Source: Octopus bimaculoides
Lineage: Eukaryota
Reading direction: 5' to 3'
Length of the DNA stretch: 64,000 bases
Assembly (NCBI RefSeq): GCF_001194135.2
Contig: NC_068982.1
Location: 155,171,505 to 155,235,504 of the forward strand
In this document: positions 20,828 through 47,011 of the stretch, one piece after another
How the letters are laid out: each line of letters starts with the position of its first letter
How positions within the stretch are numbered: the stretch's first letter is position 1
Notes under the pieces: generated by a model
Database searches by the model: none
Told to the model about the DNA's origin: nothing
Seen by the model: the letters and a program-made list of their open reading frames with translations, nothing else
Position numbers and translations under genes: made by a program

Positions 20828-20860
<33 letters not shown>

Positions 20861-23800: not shown

Positions 23801-26800
23801 AAAAGTTTGCTTTGCAATCACAAGATCTCAGGTTTAATCCCATTGTATATCATCTTCAGCAAGTATCTTTTATCATTAACTTGAGCTGACCCAAGCTTCT
23901 TGAATGAAACAGGATATATACACAAATTGAGTGGAAAGCCACCAGATGAACTGAACTTATAATTCACACACAATGCAATGCCATGTTGATTCTGTCTGAA
24001 ACAAATGTTAAGGATATACATGCTTGTGTGTGCGTGTGGAATACTCAGATACTTACATGCTAATTCAATGAGCAGGGAATTAAGTTAACCAAAATCTCAT
24101 CATTGAAACTGACAGAGACTCATTCACCTTTATTTTTATACCATGTAGTAAGGAGGAATCTGATGCTTTAGAGATGTTCCTTCATTTATCTTTTTACTTT
24201 CACTCAAAGATACAGGCTCAGTAACTTACCAGAGAATGCATTGCTATAGTAACGAGATATGGTCTGAACCAAATCTCGAGAGTTATATGTCCAGGTGGCA
24301 ATTTTGCGGTAACCTTTGATTCTGTGTACCAGCTGAGAGCCACCGTATTGAAGGGCTAATGTGTTTCCTTGGTCTTCATATAGTTTTTCCAACATTCTAA
24401 AAGAAGTAAACAGAATACAATAAAATAAATGCAAAGTAAAACATCTGGAATCCAAGGAAATTGGTGATTTTCTGTGACAGCAATAATTAGTCTATAAGAG
24501 AGATTGCTGAGTCTACTTGCTGCGCAGAATGTAGAATATGTTTCTGGATTTGCTCTTTGTCTCACCACACCACTTTTTCTCTGACTTTCATTTACAGACA
24601 AAGAGCAAGCACCAAAACATTAGTTAATACACTCCTCATAGCAACTAAAATAACTGAACTTTCCTATGAAATAAAAATGGTTTTAAAAATTAAATGCTTT
24701 GGTTCTTGAATAAAAGGCAAATTATTAATAATATTTTTTTTTATGGCTTTATGAAAAGAAGAAGAATAGTGACTATGATCATCACAGAACCTCAAAGACT
24801 GGTGAATTGAAATGGAGGAAGAAATAATGACTTATAGGTTACTGCAGTAGGAAATAGTATATCAAAGTATCGAGATTTCTATACTTCAATGAAAGACCTT
24901 ACAGATTTAAAGCATAATGGACACATATATTTTAGTGTTAAACCAAGCAATGGGTTAATGTAATTATGTCTGTTGTGGTTTGAAGCTGTCTAAGCATAAT
25001 TAGACATAATGGAATTTGCAAAAGAGAAGTAATAATGATCTTGCTAGCAGGTAATTTTTGAATACTCAGGAAATTAAGAGTGAACAGGTGTGGGGTACAT
25101 AATGGTCAGATACCAGTGATGACCAGTGGTGACACGTAAAAAAGCACCATGCAAGTGTGGTCGATGCCAGTGCCACCTGACTGGCTCCCATGCCGGTGGC
25201 ATGTGAAAAGCACCCAATACACTCTCAGAGTGGTTGGCATTAGGAAGGGCATCCAGCTGTAGAAATCTTGCCAGATCAGATTGGAGCCTGGTGCAGCTTC
25301 CTGGCTTGCCAGTCATCAGTCAAACCATCCAACCCATGCCAGCATGGAAAGTGGACGTTAAACAATGATGATGACGATGATGACGAGGAGGAGGNNNNNN
25401 NNNNNNNNNNNNNNNNNNNNNNNNNNNNNNNNNNNNNNNNNNNNNNNNNNNNNNNNNNNNNNNNNNNNNNNNNNNNNNGGAGGAGGAGGAGGAGGAGGAG
25501 GAGGAGGACTGGTCATTTCCCTTCGTCATAAATCAAACCAATGTCTCCTAAACCCCAAGGGGCTTTTAAGGAAGTTCAGTGCTTCACAACAATACAACAA
25601 AGTTGGCAATTTTTCTCTGTTACTGCATGACAAAGGACCAACAAGCTGTGAGGTACTGTGAGACTTGTCCAATCCATGCAAGCATTGTAAAAGCAAAGAT
25701 AAACTGATGATGATGATGATAAAGACATTGGTGGCAGCGGTGAGAACAGGACAACAATGACAAAGAGAATGATACAACAGGAAATAATAAAAAAAATGTT
25801 CTTACCTTACACAGTCTGTATCATATTCTAAATTGGGGCTAGAATTAACTCCCATAGCATACAACTGAAAAAAAATGTAAAAGGTAAAGACAAGACCAAC
25901 ACCTGGAGGTGGCTAAGGAAAAATGATCTGAAAGGATGCATTGAAGTATTGATATATTGCACTGATTTTTTTCTTTTCTCTCATAGAAATCAGCATTTTC
26001 AATTTCACAGTACCTCACCTGTTAGCATCTTTAGATGTAAAACCTTGTTGTCCCTTCACATCTCTGGCTGGGATTTGAGTGCAACTTGTATAAATTAAAG
26101 CAAAGCCAAAACACAATAATAATAATAAATTCTAACATAATTAGACACAAAGCAATACATTTTCAGAGGGAGGCATGTAGTCAATAAGTTGCAATATTTA
26201 ACAAGTACTTATTTTACTGACCCCCACCCCTACAGTAAATCAGGATTGTCACAGTTTCAGCAAATCAGATCAGGTCACAAGCCGAACACACACAACTCAG
26301 AAATAATACAATTGTTTACTTAGAAATAGTAGTTACCTGATATCCCAAAGCACATTTGCCAACAGCAAACTGTGCTGTGTTTGTGCGATCAAGGCAATCA
26401 ACACAGTTTGTTCTCACTACTCCAGTTTGCTTTTTTCCATATTCGGTCTTTACTCCTCGAATTCCTTTAAGTCTGAAGACAATATGACAAAACAGAAAAG
26501 CCTTAAGGACAAGAATCATTTTTATCACTAAAAGTAAACACTTATTTGTTTCATATGCTTTTTAAAACCCCTTCCTGAGTATACTTCTAATGAAATACAA
26601 AATCCAGATGTTTCAATTAATTTTCAAAATAATCAAAAACTTAGAGGGATTTAGTACAGTGTTGTTGTTGGCACTCCATCGCTTACGACGTTGAGGGTTC
26701 CAGTTGATCCGATCAACAGAACAGCCTGCTCATGAAATTAACGTGCAAGTGGCTGAGCACTCCACAGACACGTGTACCCTTAACGTAGTTCTCGGGGATA

Positions 26801-29800
26801 TTCAGCGTGACACAATGTGACAAGGCTGGCCCTTTAAATTACAGGCACAAAAGAAACAGGAAGTAAGAGTGAGAGAAAGTTGTGGTGAAAGAGTACAGCA
26901 GGATTCGCCACCATCCCCTGCCAGAGCCTCGTGGAGTTTAGGTGTTTTCGCTCAGTAAACACTCACAACGCCCGGTCTGGGAATCGAAACCGCGATCCTA
27001 TGACTGTGAGTCCACTGCCCTAACCAGTGGGCCATTGCACCTCCAGTAACTTTGTCATTATTCACAGAATATATCATAACGAAAGTTTCTTACACAAAAT
27101 TATTATTTAATTTATGTTATCAATTTCCCTGAAAGCCATGACATACTGAGAAAGAGTATATAATATCGCATATATGTAAGACAAAACAAAATCACAACAA
27201 AAATCTAAAAAATAGAATGGAATAAAGGTTTGGATAAAGAAAAATGTTTCTGTTGTTAAAACTTTCTATAACCTCAATGATGTGGAAGATCTTATTTAAG
27301 ATTGATGAGCCTTGAAAATAAATTGCATCTCCAGCCCTGTAGCTTTTTAAACCAGTTGTAATTTTAATATAAATTTTTTAAAACAGTTTTGTATCATGGG
27401 AACAGAAAAAAATCTCAAGTAGAATGACATCAAAAGGATTAAGCAAAGAGATGAGAAAGAAGACCACAAAATCACAAAAATTTGAGCTGAGGAAAAGAAA
27501 ATTTGGGAATAGACATGCTTGTTATAGTAAAATGGTGCTTTAGCTGTTCTAAAAACATTATTTTAAGGAGTGTAGTTTCAGCCATTCAGCTGAGGCCATG
27601 CTGGGACACCATTATATAAATAGGTTTGTTTTTTTTTCATACATATTATTCAGTGTCAAGTGTAAGAAATAATCCTATAACATCTCTGTCTTCTCCTTAT
27701 ACATGTCAAATTAGGATTATTAATATAAAACAAGAAACCTAGATTGGATGAAAGTTCTAGGGGGATGGAGTTGTAATTCTCGGATGGCAGGACTGGTAAG
27801 TGCATTATACAGATGTAGAGAATGATACATATTAAGTATGGCAGAAGGAAAATCAGATGAAATGAATGAACTTGTTGACTGAGTAGACTTATGATGAAAG
27901 ACATTACAGTTGTGACAATCATATTTTTGGGGTAATAACTGTGTATGTAGAACTACATTATCTTATTTAAAATAGTAGAATGCAATTTGAGGGAGATTTA
28001 GCTGTTATTTCTAGCTGATTAAACAACCATATAGAGAAGTAAGTAACATAGTAGACATAGCAGTGAAAGAAAATGGACACTGTGTGATTCAGATATTTGC
28101 TTCACAATCACATGATAGCAGGTTCAATCCCCCTATACAGTATCATAGGAAAGTGATTTTTATAACAGCCTCAGCTCAACCCAACTGTTGTGAATGATAC
28201 TGAGTCAATGGAAATGTGCAAAAGCTCATCAAATGGACTGTACCTGTTCATGGGAAATGTTAGACCAAATCTGCTACTGAGTTTAAAACGTCCCACTTAA
28301 CCCTTGAGTATCTTTTAATGGAGTTTATTGTTTCAGACATTAACACTAAAATCTCCAGTCTGAAGATAAGATCTTCCTCTCTTCTACAAGGCACAGAAAC
28401 CCAACAGAAAAGTCACTGCTGCTGATTTTAATCTTTTGGTTGAGTCATATAAAAAAGAAGAAGAAATGCACAGCACTTTTCAGGATGGGCGATAGCTTTA
28501 GCTGTATTGCTGTTTAGCCCTAGGTCAGTCTTGACAGAGGAAATATAATCAAAAGCATTCCAACCATGATCATTATATCTTTTTTATTTCAGTCATCTAG
28601 GAGTGAACTGTCCAACATATCCTTCCCATTTTTTAAGGGAATTGATCTGAAACTAAACAACAACAAACTTATCCCATTTGTTTCAATTTCTTTTACCATA
28701 CTTACACTACCAAGAACTTAACAATCTTTGCACCCCAATATACATTCTTCTAGAACTTCTATTGGGTTGTCCAGAAAGTTTGTGCCAATTTTTAAAGGAA
28801 AGAAAAAGGTCAATAAATACTTGCCATTACATTTTTAATCAACCAAATATGAACCATTTTGTTGCACAATGCATCTCTATTTTTCCTTTAACTTGAAAAT
28901 ACCCTTTTCGCAGAATTGAGGTGGTTTCATGGCAAATAAGTCGAAAGGTAAGCTACTATAAAACGGCATGAACTTTCCAGACAACCCGATATTTGAAAAG
29001 GATATGGCTCCTGTTCAGCAACCATATAGAGGCTCCTTTTGTTTGTAGAGGTAGAATCAAGAATCCATCTTATTTCCCCACCTCTGCCTACTTATTTCCA
29101 AAATTTTCTCTATCATAAATATAATTAGTGAAAAAATTCAGACAGATTTATGTTCCTATTCCAAAGCTACAAAAATATCCTCAATTCTGGTTTCCCCACC
29201 ACCACCACGACCATCACCACTAAACATGAAAAACATGTCAACTTACGGTTCAGACATCCATAATTCGTCATGAACATTAGAAGGGGAGTGAAAATAAAAC
29301 CCTGTACGTTTGATGCAGCTTTTTGCAATTTTGCCCAAACGATCCATAACACTGCAATCTTTCCTGAAATTAAAAGCAAAATGAGGAAATTTAAACAATT
29401 TACAAGTCCCCCTATATTATTCATTTTACACATGTGTTCACAGACACATACNNNNNNNNNNNNNNNNNNNNNNNNNNNNNNNNNNNNNNNNNNNNNNNNN
29501 NNNNNNNNNNNNNNNNNNNNNNNNNNNNNNNNNNNNNNNNNNNNNNNNNNNNNNNNNNNNNNNNNNNNNNNNNNNNNNNNNNNNNNNNNNNNNNNNNNNN
29601 NNNNNNNNNNNNNNNNNNNNNNNNNNNNNNNNNNNNNNNNNNNNNNNNNNNNNNNNNNNNNNNNNNNNNNNNNNNNNNNNNNNNNNNNNNNNNNNNNNNN
29701 NNNNNNNNNNNNNNNNNNNNNNNNNNNNNNNNNNNNNNNNNNNNNNNNNNNNNNNNNNNNNNNNNNNNNNNNNNNNNNNNNNNNNNNNNNNNNNNNNNNN

Positions 29801-32785
29801 NNNNNNNNNNNNNNNNNNNNNNNNNNNNNNNNNNNNNNNNNNNNNNNNNNNNNNNNNNNNNNNNNNNNNNNNNNNNNNNNNNNNNNNNNNNNNNNNNNNN
29901 NNNNNNNNNNNNNNNNNNNNNNNTACACACACAAGGGTGTGCTGAAAAGTTTCTGGCTTTAAGAGAATTGTGAAAGGCCTGGTTGAAAGCCCAACCTTTC
30001 AAGTTTTTTTACAGGGCTTAGAAAAACTGAAGGATGACTGCAATAAGTGTGTGAATCTGAGAGGGGAATATATGGGATAGAAACATAATCAACTGATCCT
30101 CTAGTATTTTCTTTTACCCAAAACCAGGAACTCTTCAGTACCCACTCATGTGTGTGTTTTATACATATATATATATATATATATACAATTTTAAGGTATA
30201 TCCTGCTGACCCCCTCGCCCAGTTGACTCGGCTGGACTTAATCAAGTCCCATCTTGCATCACTGCAGTAGCAAACCACTGATCTGCCTTCTTTATACAAA
30301 GCCACCTAGTGGACTTCTCTGCAACTTCAGTGATGGAGTTTATAGTCGTCCTCTTTGTTTTTAATTTGTTTTGCAAGAATGTTATCATTCAGATTATTTT
30401 GTCAAATGTAAGGCTTATTCATCCATATTTTTAGGAATTAATCATGCATTACCTCATAGCTCTGAGATTTTGATGTGGTTGTTTATCTTTAGAATGACAT
30501 TGTTGGGCAAGTATGAGAGGCCAGATCTGGCCAGTTTAAACATTAAACAGGTAGAATATTTGGGCTGGCTTTGGATGGTTTAAATGCTAAAAGATTAAAG
30601 GAAGGACACACATGTAAGATAATGTGGCCCTAGACGCACACCACATCTGAATAAAAAAAAAAACTAGTTTGAAAGTTTTTGATCATGTGTCTGCTTGATC
30701 AGAATTGTCTAAGGTCTAATCAACACCAAACTTACTACACTAGACTGCCATACATTTACCATTATATTACACCACAATTATATTGCATTATTGTTTCTTA
30801 TATATATGGATATCACAAGCAATAAAGTAAATTTTAATGATTCTCACTTACTTCTTACTAACACCTGCCATATCAAAACCAATGTACTGTATGTTGTGTG
30901 AATAGGCTAAGAACTGGTTGAGATACTCAATAGCACTTATAAATTCTTTGGTCAATATACTTTCATGGCGCCGTTTCTCTCGACGCTGAAAATAGAAAAC
31001 ACTCAAAAACTGAAGCATGATAAAGAACACAGTAGAAGTACTTAACAGACTAAAATGTAATGAGAGAAGTAGCAGAAGTTGTAATCGGTAGTCTGATTGT
31101 CTAACCCAAAGTCAACTCTAATGCAACTGATCTATGATGAAAGGCATTCTAACAGTGATCATCCTGTCTTTTACTATTTTGAGGCATGATGTATCTAAGA
31201 GTATATTATTTTTGACACGCATCTTTTTTCTTAAGATGGTAAAGTGTAGTTCGAGGAAAATTTGGGTGTTATTTCAAGCAAGTCAAATGAGTGTGGAAAA
31301 ACAAAACATGAGTGATGGAATAATCATCATCATCGTTTAACATCCGCCTTCCATGCTGGCATATAGGTGAATATTTCTCCATTAAAGGCCTTAGCTTTTA
31401 TATGGTTGCTTGACATGCTAGAAACAACAGCAAAATCTTCCTCACATCATACACAACCATCTTTAAAAGTTAAATGATATATAAAGCATTAAGAAGTTAA
31501 CTAGAAATAATTATGCAGTAAGGAAGAAAATGTTATTAATCTACAGCTAAATTATTCTAATTTTCCCAGAAAATACAGGACACATTTCAATCTTATTGTG
31601 ACTTCATCAACAATGTGCAACCCGCATTGTAATTCCTAAAGCTTTCAGTCCAACAGACAGTAAAAAAGTACGTATGTCAAGAATAGCTCTGTAGTTAAGA
31701 AGTTTGCTTTGCAATTATGGAATTTGGGGTTCAATCCCACAACAGGATACTTTAGGTAAGTGTCATTTGCCATAGTCTTGGGTCAACCAAAGCCTTGTGA
31801 GTGAACTATGACAAATGGAAACTCTATGGAAATCTGTCAGAGAATGATTCCCATTTTTAGGTGGCGGACTTAATCCATCACCTGATTTAACACCATCACT
31901 TGTCCCATAGGAGCCTGAAGAGGACTCCACTCAATTGCAAGCATTTGGTTTATGTGAGACAACTTGCTGCCACCTCCCTTCATTTTCCAAGGCTCTTAAC
32001 AAAAGGGATCATAGGTACTGTCCTTCTTCTTTTCACTAAGCCATTAAAAACTTTAAAATAAATATAAAAATAAAAACGACCATAAAGATTATGTCATTGT
32101 ATAAATTCTCTCTGAGTAATCAAACACAGCATAGGAAATCAGACAACAAATGAGACAAAAGAGTACTATATATGTTGACACACACAGCCTTTGTTTCAAT
32201 AATTTTTGAAAATGATGAAGAATTTAATAAAATAACTGTCCTTACTGAGTGGATTTTTAGAACATAAACTGTCACAAAATTTATATGGAAGCATTTAATT
32301 TAAATCACTTTAAAACAGGAAGTATGTATCGTACAATCAGAGACAGTCTTGAGTGGGTTGGTAACAAAAGAGTTAAATTTAATTAATTGGATTACTTTTT
32401 TATTGGTTCTAACAAATGTATGTGATCATGTTGGGACACGTATAAAAAACAAAACCCTTTAAAATGCAATAAACAACTATTACAAGAAATAATGAGTATA
32501 AATTTGAATGCTACAGAACGCTCACCTTCACCAAGTTAAGAACAATAATAGGAGCTCCAAATCGCTTTATAACATCATTGAAATGTTGACCAGCAACAAA
32601 AGCATAAGGGTCTGCTTGATCGACTGAAAGGTAGGAGAGAGAAGTAAATCATTAAGTAATACAGTATTACCTCGGTTTTTAAACAACTCTGATTATGAAT
32701 AAATCATGCTTTATCTCCTGTCTTTCTCATATTCATTTAATACAGTAGTACTTCGGTTTACAAACACCTCTGATCATAAATAGTG

Positions 32786-32844
<59 letters not shown>

Positions 32845-35770
32845 CGAAATCGTGATGGCACCTGTGCCCAGCGTCGCCTTTCTGGCACTTGTGCCCGCAG
32901 CATGTGTAAGGACTTTCGAGCGAGATCGTTGCCAATGCCCCTGGACTGGCTCTTGTGCGAGTGGCACATAAAATACACCATTTTGAGCGTGGCCGTTGCC
33001 AGTACCGCCTGACTGGCCTTCATGCCGGTGGCACGTAAAAGCACCCACTACACTCTCGGAGTGGTTGGCGTTAGGAAGGGCATCCAGCTGTAGAAACTCT
33101 GCCAAATCAGATTGGAGCCTGGTGTAGCCATCAAGTTTCACCAGTCCTCAGTTGAATCATCCAACCCATGCTAGCATGGAAAGCAGACTTTAAACGATGA
33201 TGATGATGATATATATATATATATATAAAGCACGATTTATTCCTGACCAGAGTAGTTCGAAAACTGGGGTACTACTGTACTACCATTTTAGCTTATTGGT
33301 AAAATAAGGTTCTATTTGTACCTTGGGTTATGAAGATATGATGATTTCAAATCAGCACTTGGTGCTTAACATCCACTTCTAATTACACAATGACTTCAAG
33401 AATATACATGTCCTTACAAACAGAATAAATCAACACAAATACGTTTTCCTAGAAAAAAAACAACTAATGTTAAAATTACTTCTTTTTTTTTTAATGTCCC
33501 ACCCTTATCGGCTTAGAAAAATGGGTGTAATGATACTATGACGACGATGAGATAGAGGATGAAGAGGGTGGTGGTGGTGGTGGTGGTGGTGGTGGTGGTG
33601 GTGACAGCAGCAGCAGCAGCCACAGGCCACGAGGTTAGAATATTGTATTATTGGCCACTAAGTCATAAGTTCATACCCTACAACAGCTTGCTTACTACCC
33701 TCAGGCCATCTGGATAAAATATAGGTGCAACACACCAGCTTCACAGCTGAATTTCTGGCAAAAAGAACTGAAACTGCAACAGTTCAGTATTGGGAAATAC
33801 TCAAATACATAAAAACTGCATCTCAAAAACTGTGACTAACATAAAGCTGGTCACTAACATACACTAACTTGGACCCACAGAGGTGCTGTCTTCTCTCTGC
33901 CTTTTCTGATACTACTATAATGACCTCTGCTACTCAAAGTTGACTGGTTTCATGTCATCTCCACTCAGACACTCCCACCTTATTTCTCTCTCTTCCTCCC
34001 ATTACCCATACTGTTTCCACCACTCAAACAACTATACCCGTCCTTTCCTTCAGATAATGTCACTTCACAGGAATTCCTTTCTATTTTTTTTCTTCCCGCT
34101 ACTATTGGTCTGCAAATGTTCAAACGGAATTTTAAGAACATCAAGCTCACCAGCCTTGGAAGGCCTGCAAAGGCCATGAACACATATCCTTCCAATCCAT
34201 CACACCAATCAAAGATGAAAATACTGTACCAGTAAAAAGGTAAGCACTGCTGTCATTCAAGAGCAAGTCTGACTTGGTAACTTGTACCATGCTTTCATTA
34301 ATCAGTTTTGTTGCCTGTGTAGTCACAAGCAGACATTAACACTTTTCTGGCTCTCCCACCCTTAACCCAGCAGAACAACTAGAATGTGAAGCAAGAGGGA
34401 GAGAGGGTTGTACCAGTACTGGAGTGGTACTTTCATTTTCAGCAGAAGGAATTGGTGCAACATAATGTGAAGCGATTTTCTCAATGTGCCACCTGGTCCA
34501 GGAACTGAACCTACAATATTATGCTTGTGATCCTAACACCCTAACCACAAGGCCATACACCTTCACACTGTACTGATACCAGTGAAAAATGCACGGAAAA
34601 GACTTTTTGAAATATATGAAAGCTGCTAGCACTCTACGTAACATTATTCTTCTTCTAGAATAGAGAGTATAGTCCCTTCAACTAGCCATGATTAATACTT
34701 ATTTTATGAATACCTTAGAGATGAAATGCAAAGTTCTTTACTGACAGGATTTAAATTTAGGATGTTGACAAAACTCAGTTCTAAAACCATCAAATGAGAA
34801 AGGCTACAGTCAGTAATCAGCATTTGACAGGTATGTATTTTATCTAAGCCATAAGAATGTAAGGCTTGTAAATTTTGACATGACTTGAACTCATAACATA
34901 AAGTGCTGTAATTAAATATTACAAGGAATTTTATCCATTACTCTACAGACACTACCAATTTACCATCATTCCAAAGTTAGATATTGATAAAGAAAGTAAG
35001 AAATAAAATATAATTGCCTTAAAAACATATACATATGTGTTTACAGAACTTACCAACAATTTGAGGCTTGGGAACCATTTTTGAAATATCTTGAGACCAG
35101 AACAAAGGTATGGAACCTCGGAGTTGCACAAAAGACGAAACACAAGCAGAATTCAGGAATGTTACTGAAGCATCATGGACAATTTGTTCTGTTTCAACTT
35201 CATTTGCTACTGCACCCTACAAATAGAAAAGAGATCCAATGCTTATATAGCTGATGATAATGGAGCTTTCTATATGAATTTTACACAGCGTTTGAAATAT
35301 ATACAAAATGATTATTATTTATTCAGAGTAGTATTTGACTGGCAAGTAACTCGATCTGGGACCATGCATAGAAATTCAAGCAGCTACAACATGGAAGAGT
35401 CATTTAATTATACACAAGGCTGTTAAATTCACTTTAAATTTATTTCGTGAGTTCTGCTGTTATGTGATGAAAACTTTGACATCTCATGAAATAAATTTGA
35501 AGTGAATTTAGCAGCTTTCTGTGATATATAATGGTTTATTCACAATGTAATTGTAATTCCATATTTTACAGCTTTCTATCACTGAACCTGTGGCCATATC
35601 AGGGTAACCCCTTCTCAGCGTTGATTATTGTCAAGTATATCCAACTTAAGAAAGATGCAAAGGTAGAGTGGATCTGGTTGGGCATTGAATTTGTAATGTA
35701 GAGAGACATAAACTAAATATTACGAAGTATTTTCTCCAAGCTCTACCAATTCTTCTCTCCACCTCCAATG

Positions 35771-35804
<34 letters not shown>

Positions 35805-38160
35805 NNNNNNNNNNNNNNNNNNNNNNNNNNNNNNNNNNNNNNNNNNNNNNNNNNNNNNNNNNNNNNNNNNNNNNNNNNNNNNNNNNNNNNNNNCATCGTC
35901 GTTTAAAGTCTGCTTTCCATGCTGGCATGAGTTGGACGGTTTGACTGAGGACTGGTGAGCCAGAAGGCTGCACCAGGCTCCAATCTGATCTGGCAAAGTT
36001 TCTACAGCTAGATGCCCTTCCTAATGCCAACCACTGAGAATGTAGTGGGTGCTTTTACGTGCCATCGGCACGAGGACCAGTCGGGCAGTTCTGGCAACGA
36101 CCATGCTCCAAAGGTGTTTTTTACATGCTACCTGCACAGGAGCCAGTCTGGCGGCACTGGCAACAAACATGCTCAAATGTTGTTTTTCACATGCCACCAG
36201 TACATGTGTAAGTAAGGTGATGTTGGCAACGATCATGCTTGAATGGTGCTTTTTACGTGCCACCGGCACGGGAGCCAATCAGCGACCCTGGCAATGATCA
36301 CACTCAGATGGTGCTTTTAACGTTCCACCGGCACGAGTGCTAATCAGGCGGGACTGTCATCGGCCACATCAGCGATTTTGATCTTGGTTTCACTTGCCTC
36401 AACAAGTCTTTGCAAGCAAAGTTTATTGTCCAATGAATGAGGGGTACTCATAAGTGGGCTGGTTACACCCACGAGCATAGGCCATGGGTTATGGTCTCAC
36501 TTGGCTTGTTGGGTCTTCTCATGCACAGCATATCTCCAAAGGTCTCAGTCACTAGTCATTGCCTCAGTAAGGCCCAATGTTCGAAGGTTGTGCTTCACCA
36601 CCTCATCCCAGGTCTTCCTGGGTCTACCTCTTCCACAGGTTCCCTCAACTGCTAGGGATGTTAGACACTTTTTCACACAGTTGTCCTCATTCATTCGCAA
36701 CACATGACCATACCAGCGCAGTTATCTCTCTTGCACACCACATCTGATACTTCTTAAATCCAACTTTTCTCTCAGGGCACTTATGTAAAAGAGAATAAAG
36801 AGAATAAAGAGAATAAAAGAGAATAAAGAAAATCTTACTCTGTTGTTGGCTCCTCTCTTTAAGAAACGAGTTCCAGCAAACTGATTTGACCGGCGACCAA
36901 TTAGGGTTAAATAAATAGGTTTACCAAATACACAAATATCTAAGAGAAGTTAAGGAGAACAGAATGACAGTGTTGTAAATTCAGTGACCCTTTATTGCCA
37001 CTATTCTTACAACTACATACTAAATAAGCTAAAGAGGACCTTCTAAGTAGTTACGTCACCTACAAGTAATAGTAGATTAATATCCCTCAAATTCACACCC
37101 AGTTGTTTTACAAAAACTAAAACTCATTGGATAATGTTGTCTTGGACACAATCAATTAATTCAATATGTCAAAATAAAAGATGAGATGATAGTCCCAATT
37201 GGGACCTTTCCTCATAGGTCTGTTACATCAAGGCTGATATGAGATGAAACAAAAAGGAGAGTGGTCACTTAACTTACAAGAAATATCAGTAAAATTTCCC
37301 TTAAATCACAGTTCAATCTTAAAAAAAATAAATGAAGGCAGTGAAATTTTCACACAATGATAAAACAAAAGGATATTGACTTGTCCAATAAAGCCATGTA
37401 TAATGTTGATAACCCAGTCTGAATGCACCATATCTTTACATGGCTGTTGAAGAGCTGCATTCCAAACAAATTTACTTGAAGCAACATTTTTCACTCCTAA
37501 AATACAGTCTGAAAGAAAGAAAGGAGAGAAAAAAGTAAAATTTATAATATTCCAAATAAAATATATGCTCTAGATTAGTTAGAAGAATGAATCAGAAACA
37601 CTTTTTTTAAAGTTATTACACCTATCAATATTCATTCACTCAAACCCTATCTTTCAGTTACTTAAGGTCTATCAAGTAGTGATAACAGCCATGCTATGCT
37701 GAGGAGGTCTAAGAAGCTTAAAAATCATTTAGCAAAGATCAGACTCATTCACCACTATGTTCCTCCATTCAATTTTTGCATAATTTAAATTTTGGAGATG
37801 TCTCCTTTGCCTTTCTTAGTATGAAACAATTTCTTGCTGACTTTAACTAATATTTTTGATTTATTACATTAAGCATGTTTGCATTAATTTAAGCACATTA
37901 GTTAAATTTGTTAATATAATTATGGCAAATAACGAGATTGGTAAAGATAAACATAATGAGGGTGAAAATAATATTTTTGAAAGCATAATCAGGTATGGTT
38001 GTGTAGTTAAAATTTTGCTTCCCAACCACATGATTCAAGATTCAGTCCCACTGCCTTCCATCATGGGTTAGTCTCTTCTACAACAACCCTGGGCCAACCA
38101 AAGCTTTGTGAGGGTATGTGGTAGATAGAAACTGATAGAAGCTCGTCACACACACAAGTA

Positions 38161-38204
<44 letters not shown>

Positions 38205-38396
38205 NNNNNNNNNNNNNNNNNNNNNNNNNNNNNNNNNNNNNNNNNNNNNNNNNNNNNNNNNNNNNNNNNNNNNNNNNNNNNNNNNNNNNNNNNNNNNNNN
38301 NNNNNNNNNNNNNNNNNNNNNNNNNNNNNNNNNNNNNNNNNNNNNNNNNNNNNNNNNNNNNNNNNNNNNNNNNNNNNNNNNNNNNNNNNNNNNNNN

Positions 38397-38445
<49 letters not shown>

Positions 38446-41400
38446 GGACAGAGTTGAAGTGTGAAGATAGTGTATGTGAATTGATCAACTCTGTAGGGTT
38501 AATTATGTAATCTTGTTATGCACATTGTGAACTATTCAATTCAACAGTAAATTTTCTATCAATTCACATACACTGTCTTCGCACACCAACTCTGTCAACC
38601 AGGTTGATAAATTGATAAAAAAAAACTTACCTTCTGGTAAAGTGTAAGGAGTAGCTGTAGTGTGAAACTTACTCCTGTCCACAAAAAGATATGAGTAAGA
38701 ATCAGAATTGTGAGACGAATCTTTAGAACCTGATGGTGAGTTTGTTTGAGCCATGTTGTATTGTAGAGAGTGAGTTAAATCATAACTGTAACTGTAATTC
38801 AAATGAAATTAATATAATTAACAGTTAATTGTAGTAAATAGAGAAAATTCAGAATCATCATGATTATCGACAACTTTTTATTATCCATGTCAACAATGGG
38901 TTGGCTGTGATATTTATCATTATCACAATGTAACAGCAATATTATGTGCCACGTAAAAAGTATTGGTGATAAATGCTACATAAAAAGCACACAGTAAACT
39001 CTGTAAAGTGGTTGATGTTAGGAAGGGCATCCAGCTGTAAAAACCAAGCCAAAACAAACTATGGAACCTGATGTGAGCCCTGGCCTTGCTAGTTCCCGTC
39101 AAGCTATCCAACCCCTGAGAGCATGGAAAATGGACATTGAATGTTGATGATGGTAACAAATACAACTGTTTAAATGTCTGAAAGTGTTGTTAATAAGAGC
39201 ATATATGTCAGTGGTTTGGTGGACAAAGCCAATATTATGTATAGTTTCTACTCTGAATTTGTGAAGGCACATGGCTAAGTGGTTAAGGTGTTGTGCTCGT
39301 GATCATAAGAGCATGATTCTGATTCCCTGACCAGGTTGTGTGTTGTGTTCTTGAGTAAAACACTTCATTTTACATTGCTCCAGTCCACTCACCTGTAAAT
39401 GAGTCCCCCTGCAATGGATCAGCTTCCCATTCATAGGAAGCCATGGGAAACAAGTAACCAGTCTGATGAGTCCGCAAACTCAAGACACAACTCATACAAT
39501 TTGAATGTAACCTGGTACATATTCAAGAATAAGACACCTGACAAAGCTTGAAAATCAAACCAATTGCAATGTATTGTAGATGTAAATATTTTTGTATCTA
39601 AAGACAAGATTAATAGTTTCATCTTTAGATTCAATTAGAATTGTGATTAATTCCTACAGGTAAATTATCAATGTATCATTAACTATGAAATGGTTTTAGA
39701 ATGAAAATAACCTTACCTGAAGTAGAAATTACTAGAAAGATCTACATTCTGAAACATTTTCACATATCTACAATAAAAGAGAATTAAAACATTGAGCTAA
39801 TCACAGCAATTAATCAAATTTAAAATGCTAAACCATCATAATCTCAACATCATTTTAGTGCAAAGTAGCCCAATCCTAAGTCCACTCCTCAGGAAGGCCT
39901 AATATTCTTAGTTCCTTTCTTAATTCTGTATAAGTATTTTCCATGTTACACTGAATCTAGATGAGTGTTATTCAAGTTTGATGCAGTCAGAATTGTATAA
40001 ATAGTTTGGCAAGTTACAGCGAGATTCAACTCCTGCTGAAATGCATAAGCGAAAATCAAACACATCTGAGCTGTTTTCTGTATCCACTAATGAAAAGAAT
40101 TAGTATTGTTCATCACCAAATAATATTTCCTTAACCACTTGCCTGCAAATACATTAGCTGCACAACATTCTAAACATTAAATATATATTCACCTAACTCT
40201 CAGTTCACATATACATCAGCTGATACTCAGAATAAATTATCTTGTAGCTTAGATTCAGTAATCACTGAACAAGGAAAATCACATAACACCACATAGAGCA
40301 TAACAATCAATTCTACATATGAGAGTATTACAAGTCTTTGTCTAAAATAATTTTAGAGCAATGCTAGCAATAACCTCTTATACAGAACTTGGTTGCAGTG
40401 TAACTATTAAAACAGAATAGAACTAATGTTGGGTCTTGTTAAAAGAAACTGTTTTTTAAATGCCATAATAGGAGTTGTGAAGGAACACAGCCTAGTGATT
40501 ACGGTATAGCACTCATGATCAGAAGACTGTGGTTTTCCAGTAGTGTATTGTGTTCTTGAGCAAAACATTTCATTTCACATTACTCTTGTCCACTTGGCTA
40601 TAAATGGGTTAACCCTGCAATGGACTGGCATTCTGTTCAGGGAGAACGTTGGCCTGCCAGCCTGCCTGCAAAGCCAGCAGTGTGGGATCATGCGAAAGCT
40701 ACAATGCATGGTAGTACATTGTGACCAGCAGTATATAACATCCAATAATTTGGTCAATATAGTGATAATAAAAGTCATACAGCAATGATCATAAGTTGTA
40801 GAATAGCATTTACAGAGAAGTTTTATAATAGGAGTCATATAATAGCACTTGTATAATAGTAGCACTTGTATAATAGAAGCACTTGTATAATATCATAAAA
40901 TAACATTTATATAATAGAAGTAATATAATAGATGTATATAAGTCAAATAATAGCAACCATATAGAAAAGATAATAATAGCAGTCATATAAATGAAGTCAT
41001 AATCACAGGCAATAACAGAAGCTAAATAATGAAAATGATATCATATCAACAGCTAGATAACAAGTCATATAACAGCAGGCATACAATAACAAATCTATAA
41101 TAATAAAAGAATTGGAGAAAAAAGACCAATGCCATACCGACTTTCATCCGAATGGATATGATGAGTTCCCACATTAGGTATGTATATCATACATGTATCC
41201 TCAACTTTATAAATTGTGTGTGGACCAATTAATGCAACACGGCGCCGTTTTGTAATTAAGATCATATAATAACCTTCTAAAAAACGTACAAACCCTGCAG
41301 AAAATAGAGAATATTACACATCAGTAAGCATAAAGCACTACAGATTAATAGGTATTTTATTCAGAGAAGATGAAGTTTAGTTTATAAATAATATCTTTTA

Positions 41401-44400
41401 ACAAAAGCACAAGTTCATAAATATATATGGGGTGGAATATAGCAGATAAAATCAATACCAGTTTTGATTAGTACTAATTTTATCAACAATGGAAAGATGA
41501 CTGTTAAAGTTGACGTCAATAGAAACTTAACTCAAAGCATAAAAATTTAGTCAGCAATTTAGTCATGAGTGAAAACTTGTTGCACATAAACAGAGTGCAT
41601 TGTATACAAGTTTTTTTTTTTGGCAGTTTCTTCACAGTTTCAGCGAAGACAAAGGATCTGTGCCCTTGACTTTTTGCAAGACAAGTAAGATTGATGCAGT
41701 TGTCATTCAGTTTGAGCAGCTGCAAGTTGATTATTGTGAGGAATATGTGGCTGGAAAGTAAACAACATGTTGCAATCAAAAAGGAACCAAAAAGAAAGAG
41801 AATCAGAAGATAGCCTGAAAAGTACTATAACTTACCAGCAATACCAAAAGCTGATTCAGATTTAAACAACCCAGAACCACCTTTTAGAATACTTGATAGG
41901 GGTCTATTACCCGATTCGATCATTGCAAGTGTATTACGCACTTCATCTGCTGTGTACACTTTCTGCAGGAAAAAAAAAGACATATTATGGTCAATATAAT
42001 CCTACTACTAGCACTATCACTACCATTATTTTGAATACAATCTTTTTATTTAAATTGTAAATGAAATTATGGTAGGCTCACATAGTCTAAGAAAGACAGC
42101 TCTGCAATTTCATGCTAAACCTGACAAATGATTCGTTTACAGTGATCAAGTGTTTGTGTTGTACATTAGCTCACTATCTCCATCAAATCAGTGTTGCTCA
42201 AACAGGTGCACAATGTACCACACGTCAGGTGTTGAAGTGATCAGAGAGTAATGTGAGAAGAAGTGTTTTGCTCAAGAACTCAATACATCACCTGTTCCAG
42301 GAATTGATTTCACAATCCTGAGTGCAACACCCTAAACACTCGGCCATGCACCTCAAGTAATTCTAAATGATAGCAGTCATATAAAAAGCAAACATATAAC
42401 TTCCTCCCTGCAATCACAGAAGCCCTTTTCATAGTCTCTGAAACAGGTGGGAGAAAGCAATCTTCAAACTGGGGATCTGACTTGAATGCTCACAACAGAG
42501 TGTGCTCAATAAATAGCAGCCAACAGCCAGATGGATTTTAAACTGGGTGACGGATTAATTCTACCATCTAAAAATATCTCTCCACAGGGCTTCCTTACTG
42601 TTTTGTCTATCAAATTTGTTTCACAAGACTTTGGTTGACCAGAAGTTACAGTGGAATACACTTGTGTAAGAAACTACACAGTAGGATAAAACACAAAACT
42701 TACATAGTTGCACAGCAAAATTCTTAAACACAGCAATGCTTGCATCCATAGAACGTTTCTGTACAAGACAATTCCACTTACTTTAGTTGACATCAATGTA
42801 GAATACATGTCAGAAATTTCTAGGAATGATACTTCTTATAGACTAAAATCTTTTGCAAATGACTCAGTAGATATGGCACAAAGCTACAAGATCAGGAATC
42901 TTAAGATCATATCCACTGTGCACAGTGTATTTGGATACATTCATGAGTTCAGATTCAAATCAGAAATTAAGAACTAAATCTTCTGGATATATTTTCTACA
43001 ATAAGCTGGTATTCTATCACAGGAAAAGTAGCATATCTGCTTTATCAGAGGAAGCAAAGAAAAGCTTACTTTCCAAAGATCAAACTCACTCCCCATAGTA
43101 TACCACCATTCAATTTATAACTCTAATTTTACATTGATCTCCCTTGCTTTATTTCATAGGAATATATTTTATTTGATAAAGCTATTGATACATTAAGTAT
43201 GTTTATGAAAGATAAAAAAGTGACTAAGTTGATTGAAATTTTTTTAACCATACATGAATAATGAATGACTGTAGAAAATTTGAAAAAAAAATGGATGCAA
43301 TTTATGACCTTACCATGTCATCTTCCATAATTAGGTCACGTGGCTCATTTCTATGTATCTTGAGAATGCGAAACTTAGTCTCATCATTATTTGAACCAAC
43401 GACATATATACGCTGAAAATGAGAGAATATTACAAGATACATTACCAAAAATAGAGATGGCCTATATTCAAAGAGAAAAAAGGCAAATAATAGTGAACTA
43501 CAGATTTAAACACACTAACTGTAGATTTCCTATTCATGGAAGATTATACATTGTTTAATTACAAAAGATTCTCTAACCAATGAAGGAACCTCTATGTGGT
43601 CGTTCAAACTGCTAAAAGTAACAGCCAAATCTCCCTCAAATCATCTTAAAAAAGAAATGTTGGATAAAGGTGCCATGGATTACTTGGACATAACAAAAAG
43701 ATGGGATAGTCATGACTGAAACACCTAAGTTATAAAAATAACTAAAGATTTTCAATTCTAAAGAAATCAGTATGTCAACAACCAGTAAAGACAAACCAAT
43801 AAGGGAACTTCTACATGGGAGTTGCACCTGCAAGAAATAGCAGACAAATGTCACTCATATCCAAACCCTGCCATCTTGAAAAGGAAGGGACACAGTAGAT
43901 AATGTAGTTTGAAATATGTAATGCCCAACATAAGTACAGTGTAGTTATAGTTGGAATGCTTTAATGGTTTGTTGAATCAGCACAAACCAGGAGCTAAATA
44001 TTAGCAACAAACAGTTCTACAAATTTTATTACATGCACCTTCAGCTGAAATACTGAATATCCACCATGATTGCTCAACCTGCTCAAAATAGCAGCTAAAT
44101 CTCCCTCAAATTACTCTCTTAAAAAAAAAGAATCAGATACAATGGATAATGTAATCCAAAATACAGTATCATGAAAATAAAAGATGCAATGGTCAAGGAA
44201 CCTCTAATCTTTCAGTCTGCTCAAAATAGCAGCCACATCTCCCTCAGATCACACTCTATCAGCTTTAAAAAAAAAAAGGCACATTGGAAAATATATTCTT
44301 AGACACAGCTTGTTAGACTAAACAAGATGTAACAGATGGAACTTCTGCTGTAGGTTTTCTCAATTAGGTTAGACCTGTGACTAAACAATAATAATAAACC

Positions 44401-47011
44401 TTACAGAGACAAATTTAATATTGATTTCTAACATCGGCACAATAATTGATTAGTTGTTTATTTTATTGATTTTAAGTTAACATCAGCAAGATCTAAACTC
44501 AGAACGTGAGTACATAAGCCAGTTATACCCTAGCATTAGAGGGAACTTGTAGAAGAGGTAGACCCAGGAAGACCCGGGATGAGGTGGTGAAGCATGACCT
44601 TCGAATGTTGGGCCTCACGGAGGCGATGACAAATGACCAAGACCTTTGGAGATATGCTGTGCTCAAGAAGACCTGGCAAGCCAAATGAAACCATAACCGT
44701 GGCCTATGCCAGTGCAGCATAACCAGCCCATTTAAGGGTACCCTTCAATCATTGGGCAATAAACTGCGCTTGTTGAGTCAAGTGAAGTCATTGTCGTGGC
44801 CGATGACCATGCCGGTGGCACGTAAAAAGCGCCATTAAAGCGTGGTCGATGCCAGTACCGCCTGACTGGTTCTCGTGCCGGTGGCACATAAAAAGCACCC
44901 ACTACACTCTCGGAGTGGTTGGCGTTAGGAAGGGCATCCAGCTGTAGAAACTTTGCCAGATCAGATTGGAGCCTGGTGCAGCCTTCTGGCTTGCCAGCCC
45001 TCAGTCAAACCGTCCAACCTATGCCAGCATGGAAAGCGAACGTTAAACGACGGATGAGGATGATGATAATATTATCTTCAAATGTAGAGATCATGGCTTC
45101 AAATTTAGGGAATGGATGCAAAGTGATTGATCGATCCCAGTACTCAAACGGAACTTATTTCATCAAACTTAGAAGGATGAAAGGCAAAATCAGCTTCGAT
45201 GGGATTTGAATTCAGAACGTTAAGACACTCATGTATACAACAGTCTTTTGGAGAAGGTATACAAGAAGTGAAAGTACTTGTAATATACATATATTTATAT
45301 ATACACGTACACAAAAATACATAAACAAATGTGATTCAGCTGAAAGAAAAAGAAAGAATTTTTTACGGAATTTGCCGAACAAATGCTTTCACTTTTCATA
45401 TTTTCTCTGAAAGATTGTCATATATCACAAGACATTTTGTCCAGCACAACCGATTCTGCCAATCTATTATTCTTTAATAAATACTGATTTCTTTCATATG
45501 CACAACCTATCCATTTAGTAAGTGGATGAAGGTATAGTCGATATCATTAACTTCTCCACGCACCCAGAACTTGATATTTTATTTTATCGCCCCATGAAAG
45601 GCAAAGATAACTTAGCTAGGATTTGAAATTAGGATGTCGAGGTCGCAAGGCATTGTCCGACACTCTTTCAATTAACCCATTAAAACTATTAATAACTCCG
45701 TCAACAATGAAGTGATTCTTCTCTTTCAAGTATTCGGGAAGAAGTGTCCTATTATGTCAATGAGATGAACAAGTGAATATGCTGTTCATGGTTTATAACA
45801 TAAGGTTATTCCTAGTTTAAAGTTCACAAATAGGCATAATGAAACAGCAGTTAAATCGCATTAAATCACGCTCTACTGTGCCCATCTTTCGTTAGTCCAC
45901 TCACCACACACACACTGGCTAATATAGACCTAAAATAGCAGTCTGAAAATAAGAGGGGATCGTCGTGGTAGGCACGATTTTAAGTGAAAGTGTGTTGTAT
46001 CAGTGATTACCAGATGTTAAACAACAATGATGGGCGACATGGGAGCCTCTACATGGACTTTCGATTTACTAGAAGTAGCAGCCAAATCTCTCAAATCATA
46101 ACGTACCGTTTGAAAAAGAGGGCGGATATATTATTAGATAATGTACTCCAAGGTAGGATACATCTGAAACAAATGGGTGAAATTGTTATGACTGGAACAC
46201 CTTAGATCAAGGCTCTGCTTGATCAGCGCTAAGACAATTTGAACAAACGTAATAAAAATAGTGAAAATAAAATGATACATATAACAATAAGATTTTGATA
46301 AAATAAACTGTCCTAGTAAATTCCTAAGTATTACATTTGCATAACAATGGATATACTGCCAAATTCTACTTATGGTGTTTATATTGTTTCATCTAAGACG
46401 GATAATATCACGCACTGTCTGATAATGAATGATGAAACTTTCTGAAAACCTAAGGTGGCATATAACACCAGAACTCGATATTCTAAGAGATATAGTATAG
46501 AGTAATTAATTGCTTTTTTTTAAAATTTATTTAAATATTAGATATTAGTAATTACTCAATTTTACAACTAATTACTAAATGCAACATGTCGCTAAAACAT
46601 CTTGCTTTCCGTACATTTCAGAACACTTGGTATGCGACTAAGTACAAACCCTCCCACGGAAATCTGAAAAATTGGGAATTAAAACCGAGTAGAGGACAGA
46701 AGACATGCACTAAAGTTTAATATATTCCTAATATAATGAAATTATGAATGAAATTATAACAAACACCTGTCAAATCGTCAGCGGAACACATAGGCTTTCA
46801 TTTATCAATTAATTTACAATAGAAGAGTTATAAAGTTTTATAACAACTGGTCTGTTTTCTTGACTATTATATCTATTTACCGATTTTTTATACGATTTTA
46901 ATGGTTAAAATATTTAACTGCAAATAAAGACTCGTAGAAACTTACCGCTTTTGTCTCATATAACAGCAGCTTTTGCATAGAGGAAATAAATGGAACTTCT
47001 GTTTGTTTCAT
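13889..47011 (-). CDS. FIG4: FIG4/Sac3 polyphosphoinositide phosphatase, 923 aa, 23 exons: 46946-47011, 43314-43412, 41836-41962, 41138-41294, 39717-39767, 38631-38791, 37377-37508, 36839-36939, 35054-35216, 32526-32623, 30852-30985, 29247-29363, 26337-26472, 25806-25864, 24230-24396, 23430-23571, 21404-21462, 19950-20094, 18610-18690, 17216-17456, 15923-16002, 15460-15537, 13889-14066
   Basis: Exons translate to [128 protein letters not shown] and the C-terminal [21 protein letters not shown]. Exon lengths sum to 2772 nt, open from ATG to TAA. Confidence 0.97.
14320..15290 (+). mobile_element. Decayed RTE-type reverse transcriptase fragment
   Basis: Remnants of [30 protein letters not shown]...VRQLQEKYL and the zinc-knuckle-like [13 protein letters not shown]; many stops. 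Confidence 0.7.
16727..17090 (+). mobile_element. tRNA-headed SINE with CORE-like CCTTGGGCAAGTG segment and TGACTGAAACAAGTAAAAGATAAAG tail
   Basis: Pol III-like head GCTGTATGGTAAG..GGTTCAGTCCC; related heads at 20250, 20420, 31685 and 37990. Confidence 0.7.
17570..17910 (+). mobile_element. (GAT)n-tailed retroposon 3' end with several ~65-bp subunits
   Basis: Same core and tail; repeated GTGCCGGTGGCACGTAAAA units. Confidence 0.8.
18781..19075 (+). mobile_element. (GAT)n-tailed retroposon 3' end, young copy
   Basis: Near-identical to 8790-9062 and 32920-33210. Confidence 0.85.
20560..20795 (+). mobile_element. (GAT)n-tailed retroposon 3' end
   Basis: Same core and tail. Confidence 0.8.
20833..20890. 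repeat. (TA)n(CA)n compound microsatellite
   Basis: Seen directly. Confidence 0.9.
22157..22437 (-). mobile_element. (GAT)n-tailed retroposon 3' end, young copy abutting a gap
   Basis: Reverse complement of the core, starting CATCATCATCATCGTTTAACGTCCG. Confidence 0.85.
22447..23330. other. Assembly gap (others: 25395-25478, 29452-29923, 35805-35893, 38205-38396, 54435-54444)
   Basis: Runs of N, mostly bordered by microsatellites. The FIG4 frame closes without needing any exon from the gaps. Confidence 1.
25110..25390 (+). mobile_element. (GAT)n-tailed retroposon 3' end
   Basis: Same core and tail. Confidence 0.8.
26337..26472 (-). CDS. FIG4: FIG4 exon 13 carrying the SAC catalytic CX5RT motif
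   Basis: Translates to [31 protein letters not shown], flanked by ttcag acceptor and gtaact donor. Confidence 0.97.
26661..27045 (-). mobile_element. Second copy of the (CAA)n-tailed tRNA-derived SINE
   Basis: Colinear reverse complement of 62802-63190 over its whole length. Confidence 0.9.
28760..28991. mobile_element. Mariner-type MITE, ~27-bp TIRs, TA flanks
   Basis: TATTGGGTTGTCCAGAAAGTTTGTGCC ... GGCATGAACTTTCCAGACAACCCGATA. Confidence 0.75.
29930..30149. mobile_element. MITE of the same family as 56834-57003, opposite orientation
   Basis: Starts ACAAGGGTGTGCTGAAAAGTTTCTGGCTTT and ends TTTTACCCAAAACCAGGAACTCTTCAGTACCCACTCAT. Confidence 0.65.
32741..33279. mobile_element. pogo/Tigger-like MITE (TACAGTAGTAC termini) hosting (TA)n and a retroposon insertion
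   Basis: The left arm TACAGTAGTACTTCGGTTT..AAATAGTGCTTTA matches the reverse complement of 33225-33279; an extra left-arm copy lies at 32660-32713. Confidence 0.6.
32843..33210 (+). mobile_element. (GAT)n-tailed retroposon 3' end between two (TA)n tracts
   Basis: Near-identical to 8700-9062. Confidence 0.85.
33567..33620. repeat. (GGT)n followed by (CAG)n microsatellite
   Basis: Seen directly. Confidence 0.9.
35894..36780 (-). mobile_element. Retroposon 3' end including the RT C-terminus ([12 protein letters not shown]) and five ~65-bp UTR units
   Basis: Minus strand reads [26 protein letters not shown]..[16 protein letters not shown], then UTR and tail. This links the (GAT)n tail to an RTE-type ORF. 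Confidence 0.85.
36940..37376 (-). other. U12-type intron with AT-AG ends (FIG4 intron 7, 437 nt)
   Basis: On the minus strand the 5' end is ATATCCTTTT, the branch is TTCTCCTTAAC, followed by TTCTCTTAG. The join gives [14 protein letters not shown], colinear with FIG4. No usable GT donor in the required phase. Confidence 0.88.
40740..41100. repeat. Degenerate AT-rich minisatellite (TATAATAGCAGTCA-like, ~16-18 nt)
   Basis: Repeated TATAATAG..CACTTG / CAGTCA units. Confidence 0.65.
44525..45065 (+). mobile_element. Retroposon 3' end (end of RT, UTR, tail)
   Basis: [33 protein letters not shown], then core and GAT tail. Confidence 0.85.

Follow-up and report, generated by a model that had tools for sequence, protein, structure and literature searches.

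The window analysed here, a stretch of 64,000 nucleotides of Octopus bimaculoides DNA, carries on its minus strand a gene encoding a polyphosphoinositide phosphatase. We rebuilt its gene model by exact spliced matching of the 923-residue RefSeq protein XP_052821638.1 to the window, proceeding from 47011 to 13889; over the extent of the gene, the window matches the genomic locus of this protein (GCA_001194135.2, CM046602.1) at 100% identity. By its sequence affinities the product can be assigned to FIG4/Sac3, a polyphosphoinositide 5-phosphatase, rather than to SAC1 or synaptojanin. The SAC domain (PF02383, Syja_N) is recorded on all relatives of the protein, and its closest relative is the FIG4 of Argonauta hians, at 85% identity with an approximate 717-residue model as query. 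The cluster to which the Argonauta protein belongs at 90% identity also contains the FIG4s of O. bimaculoides, O. sinensis and O. vulgaris. The peptide spanning the junction of exons 7 and 8 aligns without gaps to residues 229-301 of human Fig4 (PDB: 7k1w_F; ...GQSKLLIYGRP...) with an E-value of 1.5e-22, whereas the match to the yeast SAC1 structure is much weaker (4e-5). Of the 22 introns of the gene, 21 have GT-AG termini, with U2-like donors (GTAAG, GTGAG or GTATG) and pyrimidine-rich acceptors. The sole exception is intron 7, which lies within the SAC phosphatase domain, upstream of the catalytic CX5R motif. The features of the gene that bear on this intron are the following:

13889..47011, minus strand: coding region of FIG4 (polyphosphoinositide phosphatase), 23 coding exons, spliced match to RefSeq XP_052821638.1
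26382..26405, minus strand: catalytic CX5R(T) motif CVDCLDRT, in exon 13
37377..37508, minus strand: exon 7, 132 nt, ending in ...GGACAAGTCA, phase 1
36940..37376, minus strand: intron 7, 437 nt, AT-AG termini, probable U12-type
36839..36939, minus strand: exon 8, 101 nt, coding
37367..37376, minus strand: U12-type 5' splice site ATATCCTTTT, with the +1 A at 37376
36949..36956, minus strand: U12 branch-point sequence TCCTTAAC, with candidate branch As at 36951 and 36950
36940..36941, minus strand: 3' terminal AG
37306..37308, minus strand: in-frame TGA met upon retention of intron 7

Structure of intron 7 and the join across it

In its wider context, exon 7 ends at 37377 with ...ATTGGACAAGTCA and is followed by the intron start ATATCCTTTTGTTTT, while the intron ends with ...GTTCTCCTTAACTTCTCTTAG, its last base being 36940, and is followed by the exon 8 start ATATTTGTGTATTTGGTAAACCT. 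The 5' splice site ATATCCTTTT fits the U12 pattern /RTATCCTT from position +1 (slashes here and below mark splice boundaries), and TCCTTAAC near the 3' end fits the U12 branch pattern TTCCTTRAY. The branch motif is separated from the end of the intron by 9 nt, TTCTCTTAG, such that the candidate branch As at 36951 and 36950 sit 11 and 10 nt, respectively, from the last intronic base. This spacing is close to the optimum of 11-13 nt between the branch A and the 3' splice site of U12 introns (PMC3584512). Pyrimidine-rich sequence is found in the 9 nt past the branch motif and upstream of it, in TTCTGTTC, a feature that fits introns of either the U2 or the U12 type. Across the window the two motifs occur without enrichment relative to shuffled sequences (RTATCCTT 10 times against 5.4 expected; TCCTTAAC 4 times against 2.4). 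The probability of finding both exactly at homology-defined exon ends is about 6e-9 per intron, as calculated arithmetically from the shuffle densities. Other ATATCCTT sites in FIG4 introns (29005 and 24017, minus strand) lie away from exon ends and were set aside as chance matches.

The dinucleotide AT comes after both the end of exon 7 and the terminal AG of the intron, and hence the mRNA alone cannot separate an AT-AG register from a TA-GA or an AT-AT register. However, the ATATCC register, together with the GT-AG boundaries of the orthologous introns described below, settles the boundary as AT-AG. These sequence features indicate that intron 7 is a U12-type minor intron of the AT-AG subclass. 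A preliminary description of this DNA had proposed as much, and its account of the motifs, spacing and termini, which we place on the minus strand, is borne out, as is its numbering of exon 7, which is correct in the rebuilt 23-exon model.

We enumerated the in-frame, stop-free joins around intron 7 that combine GT, GC or AT donors with AG or AC acceptors (n=37). Only one of these, 37377^36939, is collinear with a FIG4 protein derived from a cephalopod mRNA, which upholds the earlier statement that no other join is free of gaps. The best canonical GT-AG alternative, from a donor at 37355, inserts 7 residues. The AT-AC options, with acceptors at 36948 or 36918, were rejected since they create indels, and some 31 nt separate the latter acceptor from the branch motif. 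The same junction is found in RefSeq XP_052821638.1 and XP_029657210.1, such that the NCBI Gnomon models of O. bimaculoides and O. sinensis already use the AT-AG intron. Furthermore, transcript contigs from decapodiforms encode the collinear peptide GQVNICVFGKP. These models and contigs lend indirect support to the presence of the junction in mature mRNA.

Retention of intron 7 would, as previously claimed, stop translation ahead of the CX5R motif, with the TGA at 37308-37306 lying upstream of CVDCLDRT at 26405-26382. However, the protein would be cut short ahead of CX5R if any one of introns 1 to 12 of the gene were retained, and we find nothing to support the proposal that this particular intron gates FIG4, nor the idea that it is a deliberately inefficient one.

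Orthologous introns and the polarity of the change

Two independent assemblies, of O. sinensis (GCA_006345805.1) and O. vulgaris (GCA_951406725.2), have an identical A at the +1 position of the intron. The flanking context in these species is ...GGACAAGTCA/ATATCCTTTTGTTTTATCATTG at the 5' end and ...TTCTCCTTAACTTCTCTTAG/ATATTTG at the 3' end, and the intron itself reads ATATCCTTTT...TCCTTAACTTCTCTTAG. It is 2078 nt long in both, because of a 1.64-kb indel that starts 46 nt into the intron. The three Octopus introns are about 94% identical overall, and the conservation of the 16 motif bases among them is therefore weak evidence. A wider phyletic sampling yielded orthologous introns as follows:

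Argonauta hians: 5' GTCA/GTATCCTTTG (GTATCCTTT); branch and 3' end TTGTTCTCCTTAACCTCTACCAG, that is TCCTTAAC plus 9 nt, AG
Batillaria (gastropod): 5' GTATCCTTTT; branch and 3' end TTCCTTGAT plus 11 nt, AG
Candidula (gastropod): 5' GTATCCTTGT; branch and 3' end ATCCTTGAC plus 9 nt, AG
Danionella (fish): 5' GTATCCTC; branch and 3' end TTCTTTAAC plus 12 nt, AG
One further metazoan contig: 5' GTATCCTG; branch and 3' end TCCTTAAC plus 10 nt, AG
Short Logan contig: 3' portion only, TCCTTGAC plus 11 nt, AG

The introns of Argonauta, Batillaria, Candidula, Danionella and the further metazoan contig all have the form GTATCC...CCTTRAY and interrupt the gene at an identical codon and phase, namely after the first base of the codon next to GQS or GQV. 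Octopus and Argonauta share a 14-nt block, TTGTTCTCCTTAAC, the remaining intron sequence being unalignable. In mammals, FIG4 is among the genes listed as containing minor introns (PMC7507305). The 5' site of the minor intron is CAA/GTATCCTTT in human, where the branch region is ACAACCTTAACT, and CCA/GTATCCTTT in mouse (Olthof 2019, PMC6717393, supplementary file 3); for both species this supplement gives a GT-type 5' site without the 3' dinucleotide. Several short genomic ORFs from other organisms read straight through the junction, as would be expected if some lineages had lost the FIG4 minor intron. The decapodiform genomic contig begins at exon 9, short of intron 7.

The GT-AG termini of the orthologous introns, along with the GT-type 5' site of human and mouse, imply that the AT-AG state of the octopus intron is derived, by a G-to-A change at +1. 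Thus, the comparison indicates that the ancestral state is a GT-AG intron of the U12 type and that the substitution belongs to the Octopus lineage. Among the sampled genomes, it falls between the divergence from Argonauta and the later one that separated O. bimaculoides from O. vulgaris and O. sinensis. The preliminary description had suggested a comparison of orthologues, and this shows that the intron is not AT-AG throughout animals, being GT-AG in Argonauta, the gastropods, the fish and the metazoan contig, so that the ground on which the description would have counted it as real but not novel falls away. The same comparison overturns its suggestion of an intermediate on the way from AT-AC to GT-AG: the relatives are GT-AG, and the direction is from GT-AG to AT-AG in the octopus.

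Proposed splicing of intron 7 and the alternatives to it

We regard it as very probable that intron 7 is an ancient FIG4 minor intron, removed by the U12 spliceosome, which was made AT-AG by a G-to-A substitution at +1 after the split from Argonauta. Under this proposal, recognition of ATATCCTTTT would fall to U11 and U6atac, and that of TCCTTAAC, which lies 10-11 nt before the 3' end, to U12. The 5' site of minor introns is read chiefly via its ATCC(TT) core, and hence the +1 position may be either A or G. By a single substitution at this position, a 'G-type' minor intron (GT-AG) would have become 'A-type' (AT-AG), and splicing at 37377^36939 would then yield the only collinear, functional FIG4. 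Compared with its GT-AG ancestor, the AT-AG intron probably splices at somewhat lower efficiency, a fraction of transcripts retaining it or using cryptic U2 donors. This lower efficiency is extrapolated from mammalian A-type minor introns and minor introns with mixed termini. The anatomy of the sequence, the orthology, the direction of the change and its occurrence in three genomes and in RefSeq models are demonstrated, and for the octopus intron we infer reliance on the U12 spliceosome and a possible drop in efficiency. A-type kinetics, with what is probably a modest cost in efficiency, would thus have been tolerated through evolutionary time; the AT-AG state has evidently been tolerated.

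The first alternative is that, with loss of the +1 G, the intron passed to the U2 spliceosome, which would use a cryptic GT donor with the same AG, leaving the AT-AG junction minor or absent. Two such donors are present, both in frame with the acceptor:

37354..37355, minus strand: cryptic in-frame U2-type donor ATT/GTGTGA; a gain of 21 nt (7 residues) when joined to the intron 7 acceptor
37438..37439, minus strand: cryptic in-frame U2-type donor CAT/GTAAAG in exon 7; a loss of 63 nt (21 residues net) when joined to the intron 7 acceptor

Each of them has been adopted by one annotation set: the donor at 37355 appears in O. bimaculoides models of 2015 (A0A0L8GG37, A0A0L8GG44 and A0A0L8GHF2), and that at 37439 in the O. 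vulgaris model CAI9717902.1, which reads ...QQPYICVFGKP. Moreover, CAT/GTAAAG is a good U2 donor, and a pyrimidine-rich stretch precedes the acceptor. There is also a precedent, in that activation of cryptic U2 sites is a known outcome of weak minor splicing (PMC8280824). Nevertheless, several considerations make a takeover by the U2 spliceosome very unlikely. The two joins add 7 or remove 21 residues where the SAC domain is most conserved, in a segment that aligns without gaps between octopus and human; both U12 motifs are still perfect in three Octopus species; and the evidence-guided Gnomon models of two species take the AT-AG junction. Furthermore, the only branch-like A near the acceptor is 10-11 nt away from it, which is too near for typical U2 usage. 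The models with GT donors are most simply explained as products of pipelines that disallow non-canonical intron ends. The corresponding joins could exist as minor isoforms, as seen under weak minor splicing.

A second alternative, to which we assign very little probability, holds that ADAR edits the +1 A to inosine in the pre-mRNA, producing an IU-AG intron that acts like GU-AG and so masks the genomic G-to-A change. RNA editing is very extensive in coleoid cephalopods, which lends the idea some appeal, and the 5' neighbour of the +1 site is an A, which is acceptable to ADAR; its 3' neighbour, however, is a U, which is disfavoured. A>G mismatches have been observed in human poly(A)-minus RNA at the terminal A of two U12-like AT-AG introns, in NUP210 and CRYZL1 (Parada et al. 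2014, PMC4176328), but AT-AG U12 introns without editing are also known (PMC4176328). We looked for RNA structure at the +1 A by folding positions 36900-37520 (621 nt) and found none beyond expectation (z = 0.10), the +1 A itself falling in a loop. An RNAduplex scan of 2 kb on either side gave a best partner at 36700-36746 (-32.6 kcal/mol) that leaves the +1 A unpaired. We rejected this segment as an editing complementary sequence: the duplex is a GU-rich one of about 40 bp, and 34% of randomly chosen native 51-mers from the same gene pair equally well or better, as expected of chance. The long inverted repeats of the region were likewise discounted, consisting of (TA)n tracts and N-runs rather than structure. 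Rescue of the +1 A by editing is therefore unsupported by the local RNA structure, as both the fold and the duplex controls fail to provide the double-stranded structure at this base that editing calls for. That productive splicing of Octopus FIG4 should depend on editing of AU to IU is, in our estimate, highly improbable. If true, it would mean an editing-dependent U12 splice site in a heavily editing lineage, with editing permitting an otherwise harmful G-to-A change.

Finally, an error of assembly or sequencing at 37376, masking the G of an ordinary GT-AG U12 intron, has next to no probability: although one base divides the two states and G is present in all sampled relatives outside Octopus, the identical A in identical context in the O. 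sinensis and O. vulgaris assemblies, and a search of intron 7 that found no assembly gap within it, exclude such an error for practical purposes. The reading frame that continues out of exon 7 into intronic sequence was also queried, with the A and with a hypothetical G, against an ORF collection, where neither version had an exact match.

Implications of the AT-AG state

The splicing of an ancient minor intron with a substituted +1 base, which we favour over these alternatives, makes intron 7 of octopus FIG4 a new example, from a mollusc, of the documented AT-AG class of U12 introns. The class itself is already known, as are GT-to-AT switches such as that of ACTR10 and the idea of AT-AG introns as intermediates, and the octopus junction is present in RefSeq models. 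A literature search found no paper on the octopus FIG4 AT-AG intron specifically. Its value is modest, and it opens no new kind of mechanism. It does, however, offer a well-polarised invertebrate case of a GT-AG minor intron that became AT-AG and persisted in this form through speciation, and thereby adds to the mammalian cases that have led to AT-AG being viewed as tolerated, or as possibly the opening step of subtype switching. It also exposes an annotation trap, in that three differing protein models exist for Octopus at a single junction: the collinear SAC domain is obtained only from the model that permits non-canonical ends, while the others have a 7-residue insertion or a 21-residue deletion. 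In addition, the AT-AG intron of Octopus and its GT-AG orthologue in Argonauta offer a natural comparison for studying the in vivo cost of the +1 G-to-A change and any role of editing in it.

Comparison with known minor introns

Mixed AT-AG termini are described in reviews as disfavoured and poorly spliced (PMC3584512). One study counts 11 AT-AG U12 introns in human and 8 in mouse, including pairs of orthologues with AT-AG in one species and GT-AG in the other (Sheth et al. 2006, PMC1557818). The preliminary description was right to treat AT-AG as a rare class but overstated its rarity, these numbers placing it among the commonest of the non-canonical U12 classes. Three of the human AT-AG introns, those of XPO4, ACTR10 and SCN10A, have GT-AG counterparts in mouse, and it was proposed in the same study that AT-AG introns might be viable intermediates in subtype switching (PMC1557818). 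For ACTR10, the GT-to-AT change is specific to primates (PMC4176328). On the functional side, depletion of the minor-spliceosome factor CENATAC in human cells increases retention or the use of cryptic sites in 92% of A-type minor introns, including AT-AG ones (de Wolf et al. 2021, PMC8280824), and when placed in direct competition in human cells, GT-AG sites beat AT-AC sites (PMC8280824).

The window also contains a second U12 intron, of the canonical A-type:

10327-11787, plus strand: NOL8-like AT-AC U12 intron, 5' site ATATCCTTT, branch TTCTTAAC

The gene interrupted by this intron is a putative NOL8, by resemblance. As noted earlier for this DNA, it agrees with intron 7 of FIG4 in the distance from the branch motif to the end of the intron, TTCTTAAC being followed by 9 nt that end in AC; its termini are the canonical AT-AC, in contrast to the AT-AG of FIG4. 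Another occurrence of TTCTTAAC, at 10971, was considered as the acceptor region of the NOL8-like intron and discarded because it has no open frame; the correct copy is at 11771.

A known counterpart of the octopus intron is the minor intron of human and mouse FIG4, which agrees with it in gene, position, phase and the 5' motif from +2 onwards (TATCCTTT), and which has a CTTTAAC/CCTTAAC branch site (PMC6717393). The human intron is presumed to sit at the same codon, going by the three exon bases that the supplement lists and by the fish locus, where the orthologue was read directly. The vertebrate introns differ from that of Octopus in the +1 base, which is G in the former and A in the latter. 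In its termini, octopus intron 7 is a member of the CENATAC-dependent A-type (AT-AN) class, although dependence and efficiency for this class were measured in human cells only. It further resembles the human AT-AG introns of ACTR10, XPO4, SCN10A, NUP210 and INPP5B, which combine U12 5' and branch sites with AT-AG ends (PMC1557818; PMC4176328). In ACTR10, XPO4 and SCN10A, the orthologue from the other lineage is GT-AG, one base apart, as in the octopus case, and the recent, lineage-specific GT-to-AT change of ACTR10 is exactly the pattern seen in octopus FIG4. What sets the octopus intron apart from these human examples is that it belongs to another gene and another phylum, and that its AT-AG state is fixed in at least three Octopus species.

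Protein models and length of FIG4 intron 7

Public protein models were found to disagree at the junction of FIG4 intron 7 when the O. vulgaris model P0423 and the 2015 O. bimaculoides models P0426-P0428 were compared. The 2015 models (UniRef A0A0L8GG37, A0A0L8GG44 and A0A0L8GHF2) carry a 7-residue insertion (NILLFYHY), while the O. vulgaris model CAI9717902.1 is missing a net 21 residues, a 22-residue segment being replaced by Y. All of these models use cryptic GT donors, and not the AT donor:

37354-37355 and 37438-37439, minus strand, cryptic GT donor sites of the P0426-P0428 and P0423 models, respectively

The intron spans 437 nt in O. bimaculoides, whereas it reaches 2078 nt in O. sinensis, with a similar length in O. 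vulgaris. This difference corresponds to a 1.64-kb indel, which starts 46 nt past the 5' splice site:

L008 16494-18135 and L009 13375-15018 (O. sinensis and O. vulgaris loci), extra intron 7 sequence; matching window point about 37330

The extra sequence is probably a repeat element, as a short piece of it (approximately positions 139-196) has matches scattered over the window in many copies.

Outside these species, short ORFs of genomic contigs, such as HGFIGQSNVSIFGRS, run uninterrupted across the site of intron 7 (read-through proteins P0002, P0005, P0007-P0009, P0012, P0019 and P0020), which suggests that the minor intron of FIG4 was lost in some lineages.

Two further perfect matches to ATATCCTT occur on the minus strand in FIG4, at 29005 in intron 12 and at 24017 in intron 15, the latter overlapping a TCCTTAAC match (ATATCCTTAAC). 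Both lie away from exon ends and appear to be chance occurrences.

Repeats and assembly gaps

A 32-residue peptide is common to several ORFs of the window, which constitute a dispersed repeat family; its copies lie within the introns of FIG4 and adjoining the gene. A putative LINE-like region is also present, with an ORF (...VSVYAPT...VVLGDFNARVG...) that we take to resemble the endonuclease domain of LINE-type retroelements.

8615-8995 (-), 17033-17857 (-), 22221- (+) and 32788-33141 (-), ORFs with the common peptide
49684-50226, both strands, putative LINE-like region; ORF 49867-50226 (-)
22447-23330, 25395-25478, 29452-29923, 35805-35893, 38205-38396 and 54435-54444, N runs (assembly gaps)

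Five of the N runs fall within FIG4 introns, and intron 7 is untouched by any of them. The lower GC content at 22-24 kb stems from N runs, and apparent long inverted repeats, which were accordingly rejected, stem from N runs combined with the (TA)n tracts that flank them.

A second U12-type intron in the window

The plus strand contains an AT-AC intron in a gene that presumably resembles NOL8:

10327-11787, plus strand, AT-AC U12-type intron; 5' end AAA/ATATCCTTTC; TTCTTAAC at 11771-11778, then AATTTTTAC/ATC

The exons on either side join in frame (DWVKYGQALPIMRIRQNRWK/IITVNPSKFC), and a long Ser/Lys-rich exon follows (ORF 11635-12666). The spacing from motif to intron end is 9 nt both in this AT-AC intron and in FIG4 intron 7.
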